From positions 12,958,001 to 13,022,000 of the forward strand of contig OU015568.1 of NCBI GenBank assembly GCA_907165135.1: 64,000 nt of DNA, given 5' to 3'. The notes under the pieces are model-generated. The model saw only the letters and a program-made list of their open reading frames with translations, did not search any database and was not told the DNA's origin. Positions 36,040-53,700 of the stretch are shown here, one piece after another. Position 1 is the stretch's first letter; every line of letters starts with the position of its first letter. A program made the translations under genes and the position numbers. Source of the DNA: Oikopleura dioica (Eukaryota; Animalia; Chordata).

Positions 36040-37259
36040 TTAATTTGCAGTTTTATTAATAGAACTTTCTTCAGTCTCGTCTTTCGTAACGACTTGATTT
36101 TCAGTTTGATCGGAGTCAGCTAAACTTTTGCGTTCGTGAAGGCACATAACACTGAATCTTAACTCAACATAAAAAATATTTTCAGCTTTGAAGACTCACA
36201 AAGAGTATCTTTTTGATGTTAAAAATTTGTCACCAAAAAGGAAGTAAGAAATTCCAGTAATAAAAGACGGTTGGTCCTGGCACCACTTTTCATAGAGTTG
36301 CAAAAATTTAACTCAAGTCTTTTTTTAATGCTGATGATAAGAACAACCGTGGTATCAATTTTTGCAACTCTGCTGAAAGCCACGTTCCTCAGGGTGGAAA
36401 TCTGTGGCATCATCATCGATGAGTTTCCCGTGTGTAAAAAATATGCTTTGATTAAGATGATTTTTTGTGACATAATCTTTCTCATTCGCTTCAAGTTTCC
36501 ATAGCTTGTGCTTGTGAAGAAAAGACGAGTTGAACTTCAAAATTTCACAAGATATGGATTTATCGTTGTGAATGATGACTCGTCCTTTGTCGTCAAAAAC
36601 GTTATTTTTACACACAAACTAAGAATGATTTTGATTATTTTAAAACAAGTGTAATTTACTTGATTGTTAAAATTTCGGTTTTCGTCTATAGAATAAACAT
36701 AAACGCATTCATGATGGTTCTCCAAAGAGACGGGTGACGGTCTTTTGATATCTGCGGCCACTTCTCTTCTAAAATCAAGCGGTATTTCAGTATTGTTCAT
36801 AATCCCATTCACGTCAGTTGAGAGCCAAAAGGTTGACTTTCGGTATTTCAGAATTTTGGTGACGTCAACGATGGAAAACTTGGTCCAAGGAAGGGTGCCG
36901 TTCATTTCGATGCACTTTTTAATCGCTTCGTCTTTCCTTGTTGGTTCAAGAAATATGGTCGATTCAAAGACTGGTATAGAAAGATCAAGTGTCGATAAAT
37001 GTTCATAGTGTCTCTTTATACCTTGTTCGTCTATCAATATTTTCAGAATTTCAGTTTTCGCTGGTTCTTTCAGTCCCAAAAATTGTGTCCGCTGGAACTT
37101 GTCGTTTTCTTGTTCTTTCATCGTATTAAATATATTCATAAGTATAAATGCAACTACAGGCCTAAAACAAAACTTGTTCAGAAGGCAATTTTCTTCAAAA
37201 TTCACTTACAGTAAACATAAGAAAAAAATAAACAAAATTGCTTTCCAACGAATTTTCAT
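36040..37259 (-). CDS. C-type-lectin-like protein, paralogue 2, interrupted by a 76-bp element
   Basis: DEAIKKCIEMNGTLPW..FWLSTD..ECVYV; downstream exons still open and homologous to paralogue 1. Confidence 0.55.
36295..36370. mobile_element. 76-bp mini inverted-repeat element
   Basis: Perfect 14-bp TIR GAGTTGCAAAAATT; flanked by TA (36293-94) and TG (36371-72); removal of 78 nt restores GFQYEKWCQDQ. Confidence 0.7.
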
Positions 37260-37715
37260 ATTTTATCTGCGCTAGCCTGCAAACCTCATAAAAGTTTGAG
37301 AACTCGTCAACCATAATTTATGGTCTTCATGCCACAAAAAGAAGAACAGCTACACCGAAAATTGATGCTTATTATATTTATTTGATATAATAAAGGAATA
37401 AAACTTACTATGGCAGATATTACCATCATAGTACTAGCAGTGGACCTTTGCAAGCGCAGGCGGCCCGGCCTTCCTCGGGATCAGGCGCAATAGTTCGAAC
37501 TTGGGTTCTGTCAAAGTACGACAATTTCGGAAATTGTAAAATTTGATAATTGGACGAGTGGTCTAATAAATCGGCGATAAAAGTGGAGAACTAGAACCTA
37601 TTCAGAAAAAGATTTTCAGAAAAATATTGACGTCGTAAAACTTTATGGCCCCACATACGGGATCCTGTTTTGCCCTTCCTAGAACTTTTTGAAATATTCA
37701 AAATTTGATTTTTTA

Positions 37716-40700
37716 ATGAGAATGCTAAGAAGAGAATTATTCGTAAACGCTTGGTTTTTTTGCATTGGAATACTCATAGGTAGGGATGGCATACAAAAAT
37801 TAAATCGCGATTGCGAGGTCGCCTGGGAAAACCAAGGGTACCATCTTGTAGAGCAGAAAATTCTGATTCTGATAGGACCCAAAAAAGGATTTTCGTAAAT
37901 AGGTACCTGGATTTTTAGGCACTTTTCTGTAACTCCTCTAAAGGATGCAAAAATTAATTTTTTTTCGTGGAAAGTAGTGTATTTTTATGCGAAAAATCCA
38001 TTTCTGCAAAAAAATTTAACCGCGTAAGAAGAAAAAACCGAGAAAAAAGCTAAAAACTGTCGAGAGAGGAAAACAAAAATCAGTGACGCGGCGGTTACGT
38101 AACAGCGCGGCAGCCGCGTGGCGGCGCTGTTCGCCCGCTTGCCAATTTCACCGCTGGAAACACTTTTCATTGCTATCAAATCCTTATCAGCACTGTATTT
38201 CAATTCATTTGTTAATAATGATCATACATTTTATTTGAATTCTAAAAAGTGGGTTGTTCCTACGGAAGCTCCTGATTCGCGGAAAAGGGATGAAAGGGAA
38301 AAATGATTCCAGGTCCCCTTTTGCCGGTTTTTCTTCGATTCAGTCTTTCAAAACGCGATTTAAAAGCTACTGAATTCGAATTTTGCTATCATGAGTCTTG
38401 AGGAAGGGTTGAATAACCCTTTTCTCGAAGGGAAAGAGAGAGAAAGAGAAAAAATGCTTCCAATTACGATGTCTTGGAATGGCTTTTATCTAAATTCGAT
38501 ATATATTTAACACATAATTAATAAATCAAATATTTTACAATTTAAATCAAATAAAAAGCCAAAAAGACAATCTCAAGCGAATGATTTGCTGCAAAATTGT
38601 TGTTGGCTTCATTGCAGCTCTCGTTATTTTAGCAGTTGGATTTGCTGGTAAGTCTTTTTGATTGAAGCCTTGTTTTTTATTTCGACAATAAATTCTAACT
38701 CATAAATTCAGGTTTCATGGCTGGCTACCGCGTCGGTGCTGATTTGGACGTCGATGGAGTTGACGACGATGCTGCCTACAGAGACGTATTCGATCCGTTC
38801 GACCCCGACAACGAATTCATCACAAGCAGAGAAGGGCAACAGAATCTCGGATAGAATTCAGCTGGCTCTTACTTGCTACTTGTGCACTTTTACATGTAAA
38901 ACACGGCCTGTTTAAATTTAGCTGCAATTTCCCAAGAAGATACATTGAAAAATTACAAACTCTTGGCCATTTTTATCTTAGTATTATAAGTCATAGACTG
39001 TACGAAAGATCTATTAAATTGAAATAAAGAAGTATGATAAAACCGGCGTCTTAGTACTTTATTTATTACTCTGTATCAACTCGAACCGAGAACCACGACA
39101 GTGCAGCGACAGTTTCTCCGGTCGGGGAGCTCACTTGCTCTCGAAACTATAACAATGCGCGATTCATTAAAACACTCCTCATCTGATCTTAGCATCAGGC
39201 CTGATCAGCTGGAGAAAAGGGCCTCATTCAACAGAGCGGTGAGATTTTCAAGATCCGAGTCACTTCTGGGCGATCATTTTTTTCTGCGTGAGAAGCCGCT
39301 GCAATCCGCAGTTAATATTGGAGAGCACATCCGTCGCGATAAGGAGAAACAGGCCCAGAGCTCGCAAACGTCGAACAATCAAACGAGCAAAATGGAGACC
39401 CGGGCCTTCAAGCAAATCATCGAATTCATGAACGCTCGGTCTTTTTAGCGATTTTTTTTCGCTCGAAGATTTTCAGCGATTGAAGTTATGAAAAAAATCT
39501 CTCTACACGAGGCAAGCCCCTTAAATTCAAAAATCACAAAATGGGGCTGAGACGGCCCGAAAGGCCGGCAAGCCCCTTAAATTCAAAAATTAAAAAATTG
39601 GGCTGAGACGGCCCGAAGGGCCGGCAAGCCCCTTAAATTCAAAAATCAAAAAAATGGGGCTGAGACGGCCCGAAAGGCCGGCAAGCCCCTTAAATTCAAA
39701 AATCAAAAAATGGGGCTTAGACGGCCCGAAAGGCCGGCAAGTCCCTTAAATTCAAAAATCAAAAAATGGGGCTGAGACGGCCCGAAGGGCCGGCAAGCCC
39801 CTTAAATTCAAAGATCACAAAATTGGGCTGAGATGGCCCGAAGGGCCGGCAAGCCCCTTAAATTCAAAAATCACAAAATGGGGCTGAGACGGCCCGAAGG
39901 GCCGGCAAGCCCCTTAAATTCAAAGATCACAAATTTTTTGCAGAAATGGATTTTTGCATGAAAATACACTACTTTCCACGAAAAAATTAATTTTTGCATC
40001 CTTTAGAGGAGTTACAGAAAAGTGCCTAAAAATCCAGGTACCTATTTACGAAAATCCTTTTTTGGGTCCTATCTGAATCAGAATTTTCTGCTCTACAAGA
40101 TGGTGCCCTCGGTTTTCCAAGGCGACGTCGCAATCGCGATATAATTTTTTGTATGCCATCCCTACTCATAGGTATTCATCTCCAAATATCAAAATCTGCA
40201 GATACCGAAGAAGAACTTTTCAATGGAAAGAGAACTACAAAGGAAGATATGAAGGAAATTTTTGGAACAAGTGGACGAGAAAGAGGATCTAAGATCTTTA
40301 TTGACAAGAAAAACTTATTGATTTCAAAGCCTATTGATAACAAGGACGAGTTTAAGATGCTTTAGGTTTATTACTCATTGAGAAACGAAATCGAGAGCTC
40401 CGAAAGTTATTTTCCTGGAGCCCAAATCGTGCAACTTCGTTCCCGTCTTCGCCTCTTCCCGATTTCTGCAGCTGCAAATCAGCACCAAAGCCTTCAAAAA
40501 CGATAAATTATGACAAATGGACTGTTCCAAATTATGAAGAACTATCAAATTTCCGAGAAAAGGACATTGAAAACTTCAAAAAATCAAAATTTCATTCTCA
40601 AAACTCGCCACCTTTGATTCTCTCTAAAGCTCAATCGTCGATTGAGTACGTCAGGAAGCGGTCAAAAACCAAAAAATAAAAATTATGAGAAAGCATGAGT

Positions 40701-41964
40701 TGATCGTTGGGAAGTTATGGTTATGATATCAGCCCGGAAGAGCAATTCAACCCATATTTGAAAGTCGTTGCCGACGAGAATGAACATTTTAAATTTGAAT
40801 TCACTGCAACTTATGGCTACTTCCTTATTTCAAAAGAAAACGTCAATATGATCCGGACCAAGGATGAATACTTGCTTGTTCTCAACGAGTGGGCATTGAC
40901 TGAAGATTTGAATGAGATTCTGAAAGATGTGCAGTACATCCCGAAAATTTATGATGCCAGGCCGTTAACTGATATCGTTCACTTCAAGCTAACTCATTAT
41001 TCGTCAGGGAAAGAAGAAAGGGTTGCTTTTCCCGTAACGATTCGACGCAGGGAACTCCCGATATTACAGCTAAGAAGGTCGGATGAAATATCCGAAATGG
41101 TGACCATCGTTACTAAAACTGGACTACGACCATCATGCCTAAAGACGCTTATTTCTTCGATCCGCGAATTCTATCCGAAAGTGACGATTATCGTAGCAGA
41201 CGATTCTCCAAAATCAGAAATAAAAACTGATGAATTTCCGGGGGTCAAATATTATCTTATGCCTGAAGAAGAAGGGTTTTTCGCTGGAAGAGCTCTTGTC
41301 ATCAGTCAAGTCAGAACGCCTTATTTCATCTGGGTGGACGATGATTTCATTTTTACTGAAGATACAAAGGTAGTTTTGATGTCAATTAAATTCTTCAACA
41401 TTTTCAATAGCTCGAGAAATTCGTGGAAGTGGCTGAGGAATCGCAGTTTGATATTGTTGGAGGTCTCGTTGTCAACAAAGGAGATAAAAAAGGAGCTGAT
41501 TGGAACTCATATGACAAGATCAGCATTCAGTATTCTGCAGAAGGCAACTGCTACAAACGAGATAAGCATCAAATTCTCACGAATTTACCTGGCTTTGAAG
41601 GTAAAAAATGAAGAAAATATTTTTTCTTATTACAAACTTCGTTTTAGAGAACTGCATCGTAAACGACATTGTGAAAAACTTCTTTATCGGGAGAACTTCT
41701 ACCGCCGGGTCGATTCGAATGGATCCCAATTTCTCCCAACGAGGCCACAGAGAATTTTTCCTAGACTCGATAGGAAAGTTGCGAATAGCTTTTTGTGATT
41801 TTGTCACGGTATATCATGGGCAAGAAGAGTGCATAAAAAGTCAGCCGAATATTTATGCCGAACGAAGACATCCTCATGGAAGCAATCTTGCGAGACTTGA
41901 GCAGAGTATCGCTGAGAATTGGTTTTTCAGAAATTATTTTTCCTGTCAAACTGATTTTACTTAA
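37716..41964 (+). CDS. B4GALNT1/2: Beta-1,4-N-acetylgalactosaminyltransferase-like (B4GALNT1/2, GT12) type II membrane enzyme
   Basis: Signal anchor AWFFCIGILIGIHL (split by hAT element), VTIVTKT..TIIVADDS, GFFAGRALVISQVRTPYFIWVDDDF. Confidence 0.85.
38581..38854 (+). CDS. Passenger micro-gene inside the hAT element: 69-aa single-TM acidic peptide
   Basis: Exons 38581-38647 and 38712-38854 with canonical GTAAG..TTCAG intron; MICCKIVVGFIAALVILAVGFAGFMAGYRVGADLDVDGVDDDAAYRDVFDPFDPDNEF..; AATAAA near 39021. Confidence 0.65.
39080..39448 (+). pseudogene. Possible decayed hAT transposase C-terminal (dimerisation) remnant
   Basis: LEPRTTTVQRQFLRSGSSL..LETITMR loosely follows the P-x-TS-x-x-ER-x-FS-x-x-G hAT motif; no upstream catalytic core. 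Confidence 0.3.
39511..39933. repeat. 56-bp tandem array, ~7.5 copies, each with a GC hairpin
   Basis: Unit GGCAAGCCCCTTAAATTCAAAAATCACAAAATGGGGCTGAGACGGCCCGAAAGGCC starts at 39511, 39567, 39623, 39680, 39736, 39792, 39848, 39904. Confidence 0.95.
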
Positions 41965-42406
41965 AATATATTTCCACTCTACTCAACTTTGATTCTATCT
42001 TTCAAATAAATTATTTCAATCAAATCATTTCAATCAATGATCACCTCATCGGTAAAAATCAAAAAGCCACTAGAACGCTTCAAATATTCCTACAAAACGA
42101 GTGAGATGAACTCTACGCTTTAGAGCCCACAGCGTACATAATCTTATTTCATAATAACATCTTTTTCGCTGTGAAAATGAATGGAGGAAACACAAAAAGC
42201 GCATCGGTTTCCGACCACGATGCATTGAAGGCGTTTTCTCTTCCTTGTTTCCTATATTCCTATCTTCTCATTTTCATGATTACTTGCATTATTTGCGTGA
42301 CAACCTCAATCATTTTTCCTTGGTGACAGCGGGTATAAAATCGACAGCAAGGATTCCAAAGCTCCCAGAATTTTCGTTTTTCACTTTTCGATAAACCTGA
42401 CAACCG

Positions 42407-44101
42407 ATGAAAGTGCTTGCCTCGGTCCTCTTGGGCCTTTCGCAAGGCGAAATCGTGAACTGCACGGAAGAATATCTCAAACCCCCACTGAATTTAAATT
42501 GCTGTAATTATTAGCATAGTTCTTTAAAAAATATTTTTTCAGCCGGAGAAGCTGCTGACGGTAATAGTTGCGACACAACCACTCATCTATGCTTCACAAC
42601 GCCTGACTGCTATACTGAATACGGATGTAGACTTAAAGACAGCTGCCCTTGTGGAGCCTCTAAAGAGAACGATAGTGTTTGCATTCCTTGTTCCGATTTC
42701 CCAGTTGATCCAATACCCCCTCCATCTCTACCTATTCCAATTCCCCCCTTTGACGGTATCTTCAAAAGCTTTGACTGCACTGTAAATGGAGATTTTACGT
42801 TGAGCTTGAGAGACTCAACCGGATTTCCAAAAGGGAGACCTACGATTCTGCCTGTAAGTACTCCTTATTCACTGTTTCACTAATCAAAATAGGACAATCG
42901 GGAACTCTGCTTCATTGATCGCGACACTTCTCAAAAAGTCAAAGAATTAGCGAAGGAAAATGTAAGCTTTTTGACCCTTCTTTTTTTATAAATTCATATA
43001 AGATCATAACCGGTATTTACGGGGATGTCGGAGAATGCAAATGCCCATTTAATCGCTTTAATGAAGGACCAATTTCTTTTGACGACTGTGGCGTGTTTAA
43101 AGAATCACAGACACCCATTCAAGAAGGCGGAGACTTTTACACAGTGTGGACCTTCGGAATCGGATTCGATGATTTCTACGACCAAACTGTTAGTAGAATA
43201 GCTCTTTATATAATAATCAGAACAAACATAGTCATACAATGCTTCATACTTGAAATATCGAGGATATAGCTGGGAATTCGAGTGCAAAATCAAAACTTCT
43301 GGTGATGTTCAGGAAGCATTTTCTAGCATGGCCTGGGAACGACCTAGTGGCACTGGAGAGTATAAAGCTGAGCTTGAGTTCGACTTGAAGGTTTTTTTCG
43401 AAGGTAAGGATATCCGCCAACCTTGAAATTCCACGCTAGTAAATTTATTAGGTACCCCTGTCACAACGAACGACATCATCGAGCTCGAGGAGAACGATAA
43501 TCGAATCTTTCAATTCAATTTAGACGTAGTTAATGGTATTTATTCGAGATCACCAATTAAATTAAATACACGATTTAGCCCCTGAAAAATATATGCCATT
43601 TTACCGAAAATGCGACTTATTTTTTCATGATGCAAACGACGTGACAAGCAACCTCTTTATGCCCGAAATAATTATTGACGGATGCATAAATCCTGCATAC
43701 GCTGAAGAATTCAGAGTAGAATCCATTGACACGCCAGGAGACGCGCTCACTTGGTTCCGACCAAAAATATTCGAGGTTAGAGAGCTATTACTTTCAATAG
43801 GACAAATGTTTTCTTAAAGGAATCCAACTTTCTCCAGACAGGCGTCCTTGACTGTAAGGTTAGTGGTTGCCAAAACTTCGGTACTCTTGGATGTACTCCT
43901 GGTCCAGCTTGCGTCAGCGATTACCCTGTCATAAGAAATAATGGATCTTCAGGTATTTTTATTTTTTTAAATAAATCTTACCAATTTGTAGAAAACGTTG
44001 CGAGCGAGGAAGTTTCAGCCGTGGTAGAAATGAAAGCTTCTGGAACTCTGACCTACGAACTTTCAACACTGCTTTTATTTCCTCTTTTCTTTTTTAAGTA
44101 A
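42407..44101 (+). CDS. Secreted Cys-rich, zona pellucida (ZP)-domain-like protein with hydrophobic C-terminus
   Basis: Signal MKVLASVLLGLSQG; Cys-rich module, Pro hinge, ZP-like FDDCG..WEFECKIK and IIIDGC..FRPKIF; C-terminal LLLFPLFFFK*. Confidence 0.6.
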
Positions 44102-50700: not shown

Positions 50701-53700
50701 CCGAGCGCATATTCTTCCCGCGCTCTTCCACTTTTGCAAACCCCTGGTTATTGTTATTACAAAATAAATATAATAAAGCGTACTAGATCACTGTAAACTG
50801 AAAAGCAAGACTGCTGACAGGGATTTTGAGACGAGCAGAGTCCAATTATAGAAAGATGGTTAAAAATTTCCGCACAGGCATCTTTATCCGTGTCACAAGT
50901 CGCTTGATTCATTGCACAATAATAAGTCTCATCTGAACCATCAGCACAGTCGTCTTTTCCGTCGCAAAGAAATTCGGAAGAGATGCATCCTCCGCTACTA
51001 CAGCGGAAGACGTTGTCAAGCAAGTTCAATTCATCATCGTAACAATTGGTGATGTTCGCGAGCGAGCTGCACTGGGCTTCGTCAGAGCCGTCTAGGAAAA
51101 TAAATCAGGTAAGTATTAAAACAACAAGGTGGCACCTTGGCAGTCCGCATTTCCGTCGCACTCGAGATTTCCAGTCGTTTGATCACCAATACATTGAGCG
51201 GAGCCATCTGCACGAGTCTTGCACAAGAATCCTTTGCATTCATTGTCATGATCACAGAAACGCTCGTCCGCGGCTATTTGTGTTACTGGGTTGATGTGAC
51301 AGTCGTTTTTGCCATCACAGACTTGACTTCGATCTAAAGTAAAATCAAAGTTCCCTTACTTATATTTTTTAAATACCGATGCACTGTGGCCCAGCATCAG
51401 CATCGCAGGAAAATTCTTCAGGGCTACAACCACAGTTTTCCTCGTCGGCTCCATCTGGGCAATGATTCTCGCCATCACAAATTTGATGCGATAGAACGCA
51501 TTGGTTGTTGCAGTAAAGCCCAGTTTCGCAAGGATGCGAATAACTTGGATTACCACATAAAGCGTCATCTTCGTCTTCGTTATTTGGACAATCATTTCGA
51601 CCATCACAAACCCATGCTTGCCGGGCGCAAACGTTTTTGCCTGATTTGTGGCAATGAAAAGCATCAGGAACGTCGCAGTCGAGTTGTTTACAGTCGGATT
51701 CATCCTCGCCATAGCCACAATTGATGATTCCATCACATTTCTGACTCTGACTGATGCATTTCAATGACCTTAAAAATAATCTAGAGTCAATTTCTCGAAG
51801 ATTCTGAATACCGAACGCAATAGTATTGGTCTGCTCTGCAATGAGGAGGAGGACATTTATATTCATCGTCTCTACGAATACAGTGCGCAGTTCCATCACA
51901 AAGAGCTTTCTGTGGAAGGCAGTCGCTCATGCGAGGAGTGTAGCCGTAACGTCGGACGATTGTTTTGCACTGATACATTCCACTAGGACACTTGCAGGCG
52001 CTATGAGTTTCGTCTTCTTTATTTGGACAGTCGATAGTTCCATCGCAGAATTTACTCTGTTCCACACAGCGCTCGTTTCCTTATAAATTGCTCAAAAAGT
52101 TCAATGAGTAAAATAAACCTGATCCTGAAGGCGAGCATTTTCGACGAGTTCCCGGAAGAACAGAGCAGGGATCTAAATTTTTTCGCGAAAATCGCAATTT
52201 GCGAATATTTTGCGATTGCGATGCGAAATTTCGCAGAAAATTCGCAATCCAAAAACTTTTTTGATCTAATCGCAATCGCATCGCAATCGCAACTCAGTTT
52301 TCGCTAATAATTCGCAAATTGCGATTTTTTTGCGAATTTCGGTCTTGTCAAAGTGCTCCCTTGTTATTCTGACATCAGTTTTCTTTGACTCAGAGCCTAT
52401 GTTCTGTGTTCTTAAGGCTTCATTGAAAGCCTGACCTCAAAAAATTTTCTTAATTCTATGAAAAGTTACTTTTTTCGCTAAAATTTCGCAAATAGCGACA
52501 AAATCGCAATTCGCGAAAAATTCGCAATTTGCGACAAAAATCGCAATCGCATCGCAATTTCCGGAGTATTTTGCGTCGCAATCGCATCGCAATCGCAATT
52601 GATTTTCGGCAAAAATTTAGATCCCTGGAACAGAGCAGTCAAAATTTCCGCACTCCTTCTCATCAGAACCATCTGCACAGTCTGGAACTCCATCGCAGAG
52701 AGAAATTGGAGCAATACAGTATTTCGAATCCCGTGTTCGTTCGGCTTCTTCCAACTGATCATTCGAAAGCCCTCCGCAGGTTAAAAATCCTCTGTCGCAA
52801 TGGTTACCTTGTTCCTTTGTTTGTTTCCAAACTTCCTCGCAGTTGCCAGTGTCACTATTCATTTTCGTAAATGAGCCGCAGTCATCAACGCATTTTCCGG
52901 TCGAGGAGTCCCTTCTGTATCCATCTCCACAAGTGCAGACAGCATCCGGTCTCATTCCGTTTCCTGGCTTGAGGAGACAGAGTTCGTTTGGATCGCATTT
53001 ATTTTCGCATGGATTTCCAGAGTCCAGAGATGGTTGTAAAGCTTTATCAATAACAACGATTGACATTGGCTTTTGATCAAGTGATTTTGCGAGAAGATTT
53101 TCTGCCTCACATTCCAAGCTTGCATCACAATTTTTATGGATGCGGTAGATGCTCTTTTGTTGTTCTTCCATTCCGATATATAAATATACTCCTCGAAGAG
53201 TGCGATTGAAAATATATGAGTGCTATCATCTGTAACAGGCTTGAAAACATACTGGAACTCGGTGAAATCGAAATTTGTTCTCGCAATATAATCCTCCCGA
53301 GCATCAACGAAGTAGATCATGGGCGAGGATGACCAATTGCCGCTGAAATCCTCTGAACTAGCAGTGATGTCAATAATGATGTCATTTGGCCAAGAAACTG
53401 GAGGAGCTCCTTGCATTGTGTTATCTAAGAGAATTTTTGCATCAGTTCCATCCATATTCACTCGGCCAATGTGACTGTAAGTTCCCCAGTCGGAATAGAA
53501 AAGGACACCCTTCGGCTGATAAAGTGCAACGGCTCTTATGTGCTTGAGTTTATCTCCAACTCCAGGAGTATTCTCGTCCATAAGAGTTTTCGTAAATCGT
53601 GGACCGTCCATTTCTCCAGTCATAACGAAGAGCTTTCCGTTAATTTTATCGCCAAAATAGATATTCCCAGTAATCCAATCTACAGAAAGAGCATCGATTT

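Follow-up and report, generated by a model that had tools for sequence, protein, structure and literature searches.

A cargo-bearing hAT-type transposon in coding exon 1 of an Oikopleura dioica glycosyltransferase gene: a candidate newborn intron

Among animals, Oikopleura dioica is the classic example of large-scale intron turnover, and where its new introns come from is still debated. In maize, exonic insertions of the hAT elements Ac/Ds can be spliced, and in sh2 a Ds element gave rise to a de novo intron. The hallmarks of the hAT superfamily are an 8-bp target-site duplication and a TAGGG terminus, and its terminal inverted repeats start with YARNG, as in Ac (TAGGGATGAAA). Introners, for their part, were reportedly presented by Huff et al. 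in 2016 as intron-generating DNA transposons. Such elements are found in Micromonas, Aureococcus, dinoflagellates, and others (Gozashti et al. 2022, PMC9860276), and tunicate introners have been validated in Styela clava (Gozashti et al. 2025, PMC12130899). The main texts of these two papers mention neither hAT nor Oikopleura, and a literature search returned no paper on hAT-derived introns in O. dioica. In the larvacean Fritillaria borealis, most introns are derived from MITEs (Henriet et al. 2019, summarised in PMC11282704). Precise intron gain through the insertion of a transposon into AGGT is an older model, with a table of cases that includes Oryza, Drosophila, Oikopleura, and Zea (Yenerall and Zhou 2012, PMC3443670). 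As for splice sites, 11% of O. dioica introns are non-canonical (PMC8008620).

The window referred to below is the whole stretch of 64,000 nucleotides that was analysed, taken from chromosome PAR of the O. dioica Okinawa assembly OKI2018_I69 (GCA_907165135.1, OU015568.1). It includes the gene g12158, of which coding exon 1 is interrupted by a 2.4-kb element. The explanation put forward here, to which an even chance is given, is that of a newborn intron, the candidate being spliced at least partly on the alleles carrying the element. Since the exonic insertion is polymorphic and its empty allele is known, it allows a direct test of transposon-made introns in a chordate. It also tests the limits of the mechanism, with a size of 2.4 kb, long pairing arms, a nested gene on the same strand, and internal poly(A) signals.

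The element and its cargo

The element covers positions 37781-40164 of the window (2,384 bp, no strand assigned), its first letters being TAGGGATGGCAT (37781) and its last ones ATGCCATCCCTA (40164). It is flanked by two copies of CTCATAGG, at 37773-37780 and 40165-40172, a duplication that is perfect over 8 bp; together with the flanking TA, 12 nt are common to both sides (TACTCATAGGTA). The CTCATAGG-type target is carried once by each of eight empty sites. The terminal inverted-repeat arms are located at 37781-38016 (236 nt) and 39931-40164 (234 nt), with 225 of 237 aligned columns identical (95%), and the termini, TAGGGATGG...CCATCCCTA, show a YARNG-type start. The original prediction of a hAT element with inverted repeats of about 235 bp is thus borne out. 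Inside the element, the list of open reading frames (ORFs) contains no transposase and no long ORF, the longest one encoding 115 aa. The element is assigned to the non-autonomous hAT type because the 8-bp duplication and the TAGGG terminus come without a transposase ORF. Judged by its sequence, 37781-40164 is therefore a cargo-bearing non-autonomous hAT-type element in coding exon 1, with arms that are unusually long for a hAT. The 23-nt terminus occurs at two places in the window, both of them ends of the element, with 0 expected; this terminus search found no second copy of the element in the window. An Rfam search of 36500-42500 matched no family.

The cargo includes a passenger micro-gene of two exons, g12159, at 38581-38854 on the + strand, which is also the strand of the host gene. 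It encodes 69 aa, with an intron at 38648-38711 and a likely poly(A) signal, AATAAA, at 39023. The search for homologues of g12159 found none except g17055, a copy 92-98% identical on the Y-specific region (OU015570.1), from which it is separated by three synonymous and four non-synonymous differences. The copy g17055 is intact, although the element that carries it (L003:5478-6398) lacks its 5' part and has an internal deletion; for this carrier, the sole gene called within 6 kb on either side is its own micro-gene. The deletion junction of this Y-region copy (38881 to 40069) is also present in two DNA contig runs from different studies, X25 and X26.

A second piece of cargo is a 115-aa ORF at 39101-39448 (+ strand), for which no Pfam match was found and whose origin was identified by an exhaustive protein search. 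It displays 74% identity to residues 381-487 of a 1,010-aa SPRY-domain protein encoded on a marine metagenome contig, which designates 39101-39448 as a captured fragment of a host gene. In X25, loose contig ends at 39041, 39056, and 39434 place the same pieces in other contexts. Adjoining the right arm, a tandem array with no strand assigned extends over 39511-39933, with 7.5 copies of a 56-bp unit (GGCAAGCCCCTTAAATTCAAAAATC...). The summed contig depth of this array is 1.2-3.1e5 in X25 and X26 versus about 150 for single-copy flanks, i.e., around 1,000 times higher. The unit thus resembles a satellite that is highly abundant in the Okinawa genome and that has, in this instance, been taken up in a transposon.

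Another hAT-like MITE, unrelated to the former element, is located at 52166-52626 of the window (site 52158-52634), with termini CAGGGATCT...AGATCCCTG and an 8-bp duplication, GAACAGAG. This MITE is dense in TCGCAA/GCGATTGCG motifs, and the 2.4-kb element has a single GCGATTGCG at about 25 nt from each end. The motif may be a transposase-binding motif shared by both elements.

The interrupted gene and the empty site

The host gene g12158 (37716-41964, + strand) encodes a B4GALNT1-like glycosyltransferase, its product matching human B4GALNT1 (PDB 9h6j, E 2e-55) and Pfam PF00535. The protein of the public isoform g12158.t1 (CAG5089280.1, 548 aa), when mapped to the window, is distributed over six exons (37716-37779, 40172-40344, 40407-40654, 40715-41369, 41411-41600, and 41648-41964), in agreement with the earlier view of a gene that is open apart from the element. 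Introns 2 (40345-40406, 62 nt) and 3 (40655-40714, 60 nt) are non-canonical GA-AG introns, and introns 4 and 5 are GT-AG introns of 41 and 47 nt. Both boundaries of each GA-AG intron are conserved in two wild contigs, L004 and L005.

The element interrupts exon 1 after 22 residues, so the gene is indeed a B4GALNT-like one split in its signal anchor, as first described. Exon 1a (37716-37779, + strand) contains the start codon, the 22 first residues, and most of the hydrophobic N-terminal anchor. Exon 1b (40172-40344, + strand) includes, near 40251, the ATG of the public isoform t2, a protein of 501 aa with MKEIFG as first residues, which begins downstream of the element.

The candidate GT-AG intron extends over 37780-40171 on the + strand and corresponds exactly to intron 1 of g12158.t1 (junction ...CIGILIG|IHLQISK). 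Its 2,392 nt represent the element plus one copy of the duplication. The splice dinucleotides are those initially proposed, with GT at 37780-81 and AG at 40170-71. At the left boundary, ATAG|GTAGGG, the final G of the left duplication copy is base 1 of the candidate intron, and the duplication forms AG|GT with the first T of the element. At the right boundary, the pyrimidine-rich CTCATAG|G, the right copy of the duplication is the source of the AG and forms AG|G. A GT donor, an AG acceptor, and a pyrimidine tract are thus all found (ATAG|GTAGGG ... GCCATCCCTACTCATAG|G). After deletion of 37780-40171, the rejoined frame reads MRMLRRELFVNAWFFCIGILIG|IHLQISK, and the N-terminus is letter for letter that of CAG5089280.1, which confirms a removal without footprint. 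As in an introner, the boundaries of the element are those of the intron, and the coding sequence is restored on removal. The unspliced frame ends at 37896-37898, the stop already predicted for read-through.

The existence of an empty site, which was to be looked for in other individuals, is established. Two DNA contig runs, X25 and X26, were aligned to 37300-42200, and each includes one contig that passes from 37770 to 40163, omitting exactly 2,392 bp, with 12 letters common to both sides. These contigs are genomic since the flank contig 40168-40990 spans introns 2 and 3. X25 covers the empty joint at a depth of 130.9 (flanks, 143-152), and X26 at 119 (upstream flank, 105-112). Over the flank 40200-40268 of X26, the reference alleles are at about half depth and the empty joint is at full depth, which suggests that in this run even a reference-like haplotype is empty at the site. 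Over 40168-40990, the X25 haplotype and the window disagree at 30 of 824 positions (3.6%), and X25 also has a contig identical to the reference at 41081-41261. The very high local diversity at 40168-41261 complicates read mapping at 95% likeness.

The ENA marine metagenome assemblies were searched with the first 80 residues of the g12158 protein as the query, and five uninterrupted exon-1 ORFs were retrieved. In the six metagenome contigs concerned (L004-L009; the names of two refer to Tara Oceans data), the alignment to the window breaks off at 37782 and starts again at 40163. Identity to the window is 93-96% for three of them and 78-88% for the other three. With the 363-aa catalytic ORF as the query, only g12158 itself and relatives at 35-40% were found. 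The residues CIGILIGI are invariant in the proteins of all six contigs. The wild empty sites read ACT[C/T]ATAGGTATT, in a single occurrence. The site is GGAATACTTATAGGTATTCAT in near wild relatives and ATTGGT in distant ones, and the GGAATACTTATAGGTATTCAT of the former implies that the AG|GT protosplice site predates the insertion. As the orthologous site is empty in two DNA runs and in six contigs covering 78-96% identity, the insertion is derived and young. It is polymorphic, the filled site being present, among the sources compared, in the reference assembly alone; the exon was originally uninterrupted, and this remains its common form.

Splicing or loss of the carrier allele

The newborn-intron explanation starts from a very recent insertion of a cargo-bearing non-autonomous hAT into exon 1 of g12158, on the haplotype represented by the reference assembly. 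Its target (ATAGGTATT in the nearest wild relatives) already contained an AG|GT protosplice site, and the duplication over 8 bp therefore yields AG|GT(AGGG) on the left and CTCATAG|G on the right. Removing the element with one copy of the duplication as a GT-AG intron restores the original mRNA exactly. We infer that the spliceosome uses both boundary sites in at least part of the carrier transcripts, which would make the element a leaky newborn intron. Read-through (stop at 37896-98), splice sites within the element, or premature polyadenylation there would account for the loss of the remaining carrier transcripts. Binding of U1 to the donor could take place co-transcriptionally, before the right arm is made, and later pairing of the arms could bring the acceptor close.

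Several observations argue for splicing, beginning with the anatomy of the element, the exact restoration of the frame, and the identity of the t1 intron with 37780-40171. The donor context AG|GTAG resembles that of intron 4 of the same gene (AAG|GTAGTT), and the species tolerates varied splice sites, with GA-AG introns in g12158 itself. Moreover, the model of transposon insertion into an AGGT target is established, and Oikopleura cases are listed for it (PMC3443670).

The competing explanation, rated a little short of an even chance, is a null or strongly hypomorphic allele on a rare haplotype, probably heterozygous in the sequenced male, for which the t1 intron is an annotation artefact. The GT-AG option would then be fortuitous, the element having happened to insert where an AGGT was already present. 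The mRNA of culture mates with empty alleles would have been aligned with a gap, for which the aligner picks the sole GT-AG register in the 12-nt ambiguity. Indeed, the OKI2018_I69 genome was obtained from long reads of one male (I69), whereas the RNA-seq used for the AUGUSTUS intron hints came from pooled culture embryos and adults (PMC8008620). The mRNA of an empty allele on the filled reference needs a gap of 2,392 nt, and 37780-40171 is the only GT-AG register available for it. As the RNA was pooled and empty alleles exist, splicing and polymorphism predict the same t1 gene model. The empty site at approximately flank, i.e., about single-copy, depth in X25 and X26 and the pooled RNA can explain the annotated intron without any splicing. 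The six empty wild contigs, the filled site found in no source except the assembly, and the annotated t2 that begins downstream of the element point in the same direction. On the other hand, the boundaries are good matches to splice sites and the spliceosome of O. dioica is permissive, two features that weigh against a null allele.

In silico insertions of a TA...TA element with an 8-bp duplication, placed at every position of the g12158 coding sequence, were used to estimate how often such a geometry arises. An exact GT-AG option appears at 2.9% of the coding-sequence positions and at 3.2% of sampled window positions; including GC and GA donors, an exact option appears at 8.9% of the coding-sequence positions. 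An option offered by about 3% of random coding positions favours a newborn intron, but this figure is subject to ascertainment bias, as the case was picked for its spliceability when the sequence was first read. For a null allele, the same simulation indicates that 3-9% of insertions look spliceable by chance. Taken at a single site, the exact GT-AG option is suggestive, yet not very improbable.

At the transcript level, the support for the intron 37780-40171 consists of the annotation. Two oligo-dT RNA runs from 2026 were compared with 37300-42200; the first one (X4) gave 0 reads and the second one (X5) 2 reads, both inside the element. With 0 reads on the gene in either run, they yield neither a junction read nor a pre-mRNA read and do not bear on splicing. 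These runs probably represent another cryptic lineage, or else g12158 is unexpressed in them; the former is proposed because many runs with the same species label are devoid of any of the sequence words of the locus. The initial claim of an element acting as an introner is thus supported for the geometry, the scarless removal, and the t1 intron, but not for splicing on the carrier allele, for which the annotation relies on pooled RNA.

The structure of the element pleads against splicing. The candidate intron is about 50 times longer than the median intron (49 bp) and harbours a nested gene on the same strand. Its sense strand displays a consensus donor at 38648, five TTTYAG-type acceptors, and eight AATAAA/ATTAAA hexamers. 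A minimum-energy fold was computed for 37716-40344; of 255 positions counted in the left arm, 234 have their partner in the right one, the duplex being predicted at about -380 kcal/mol. In this predicted fold, the donor hexamer pairs with 40160-65, the entire 40120-40165 is in a stem, and the pyrimidine tract and the likely branch-point zone are found inside the arm duplex of about 235 bp. According to these predictions, the splice sites would not be accessible and stronger competing signals would be present, in line with a null allele. The idea that pairing of the arms brings the two splice sites together is therefore half sustained: the fold does so, but the same duplex buries the donor and the acceptor region.

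An improbable alternative is that transcripts of the carrier allele lack exon 1a, either from a start within the element or with AG 40171 acting as a trans-splice acceptor. Translation from the ATG at 40153 or from M48 (t2) would give an enzyme without its membrane anchor. Trans-splicing is widespread in O. dioica, the annotated t2 starts at MKEIFG, and the right inverted repeat contains, at 40153, an ATG whose reading frame continues into that of exon 1b (MPSLLIGIHLQISK..., 40153-40365). However, a Golgi type II glycosyltransferase devoid of its anchor would probably be mislocalised, and t2 may be a mere annotation alternative. An assembly artefact, or a somatic insertion absent from the germline at this site, is very improbable: no independent run among those compared shows a contig bridging flank and element, an absence that contigs cannot establish, but the perfect 8-bp duplication, on which an assembly artefact was rejected as unlikely, and the complete inverted repeats are the signature of a real transposition, and the assembly derives from long reads of one individual. 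Altogether, readings other than a newborn intron and a null allele are given a small part of the probability.

The outcome matters in both cases. If the element is not spliced, pooled RNA mapped on a single-individual assembly turns insertion polymorphisms into false introns, and these would inflate the counts of "recent intron gain" in O. dioica.

Comparison with known systems

The cargo recalls Pack-MULE-type transduplication, as a captured SPRY-domain gene fragment and a small two-exon gene are found inside the element, which belongs to a different superfamily. With maize Ac/Ds, the element shares the hAT superfamily, the 8-bp duplication, and a TAGGGATG-type terminus, and an exonic Ds element is removed by the spliceosome, as the element in g12158 would be. 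Splicing of maize Ds usually employs intra-element sites and is imprecise, whereas the geometry in g12158 allows a scarless removal.

The MITE introns of Fritillaria, as summarised in PMC11282704, are those of the same animal class; they occupy lineage-specific positions and likewise bear inverted repeats with target-site duplications. For them, it has been proposed that splicing neutralises transposon insertions in genes. They are described there as mostly AG-AC/AG-AT, short, fixed, and proven spliced, whereas the g12158 candidate is GT-AG, 2.4 kb long, and polymorphic. As in introners, inverted repeats and a target-site duplication are placed exactly as an intron, the duplication completes one splice site, and the mRNA is unchanged by the removal. 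Unlike the g12158 element, with its 2.4 kb, long arms, and cargo, most introners are short, and the present intron is a candidate from its sequence. A single full-length copy of the element was seen, the comparison covering the window and the Y-region copy.

In common with the AGGT model, the insertion hit a protosplice site, ATAG|GTAT, AG|GT-type sequence is found at both ends, and removal is exact. It differs in that the 8-bp duplication holds AGG only, the T of the donor being the first base of the element. A family with a TAGGG terminus would thus complete a donor at any NNNNNAGG target. That currently active hATs of this kind exist in the Okinawa lineage, with exonic insertions spliced at once, including one of 2.4 kb that brings its own gene, is a tentative and rather doubtful proposal. 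If true, the birth of an intron and of an instant intron-nested gene would be caught while still polymorphic in a chordate.
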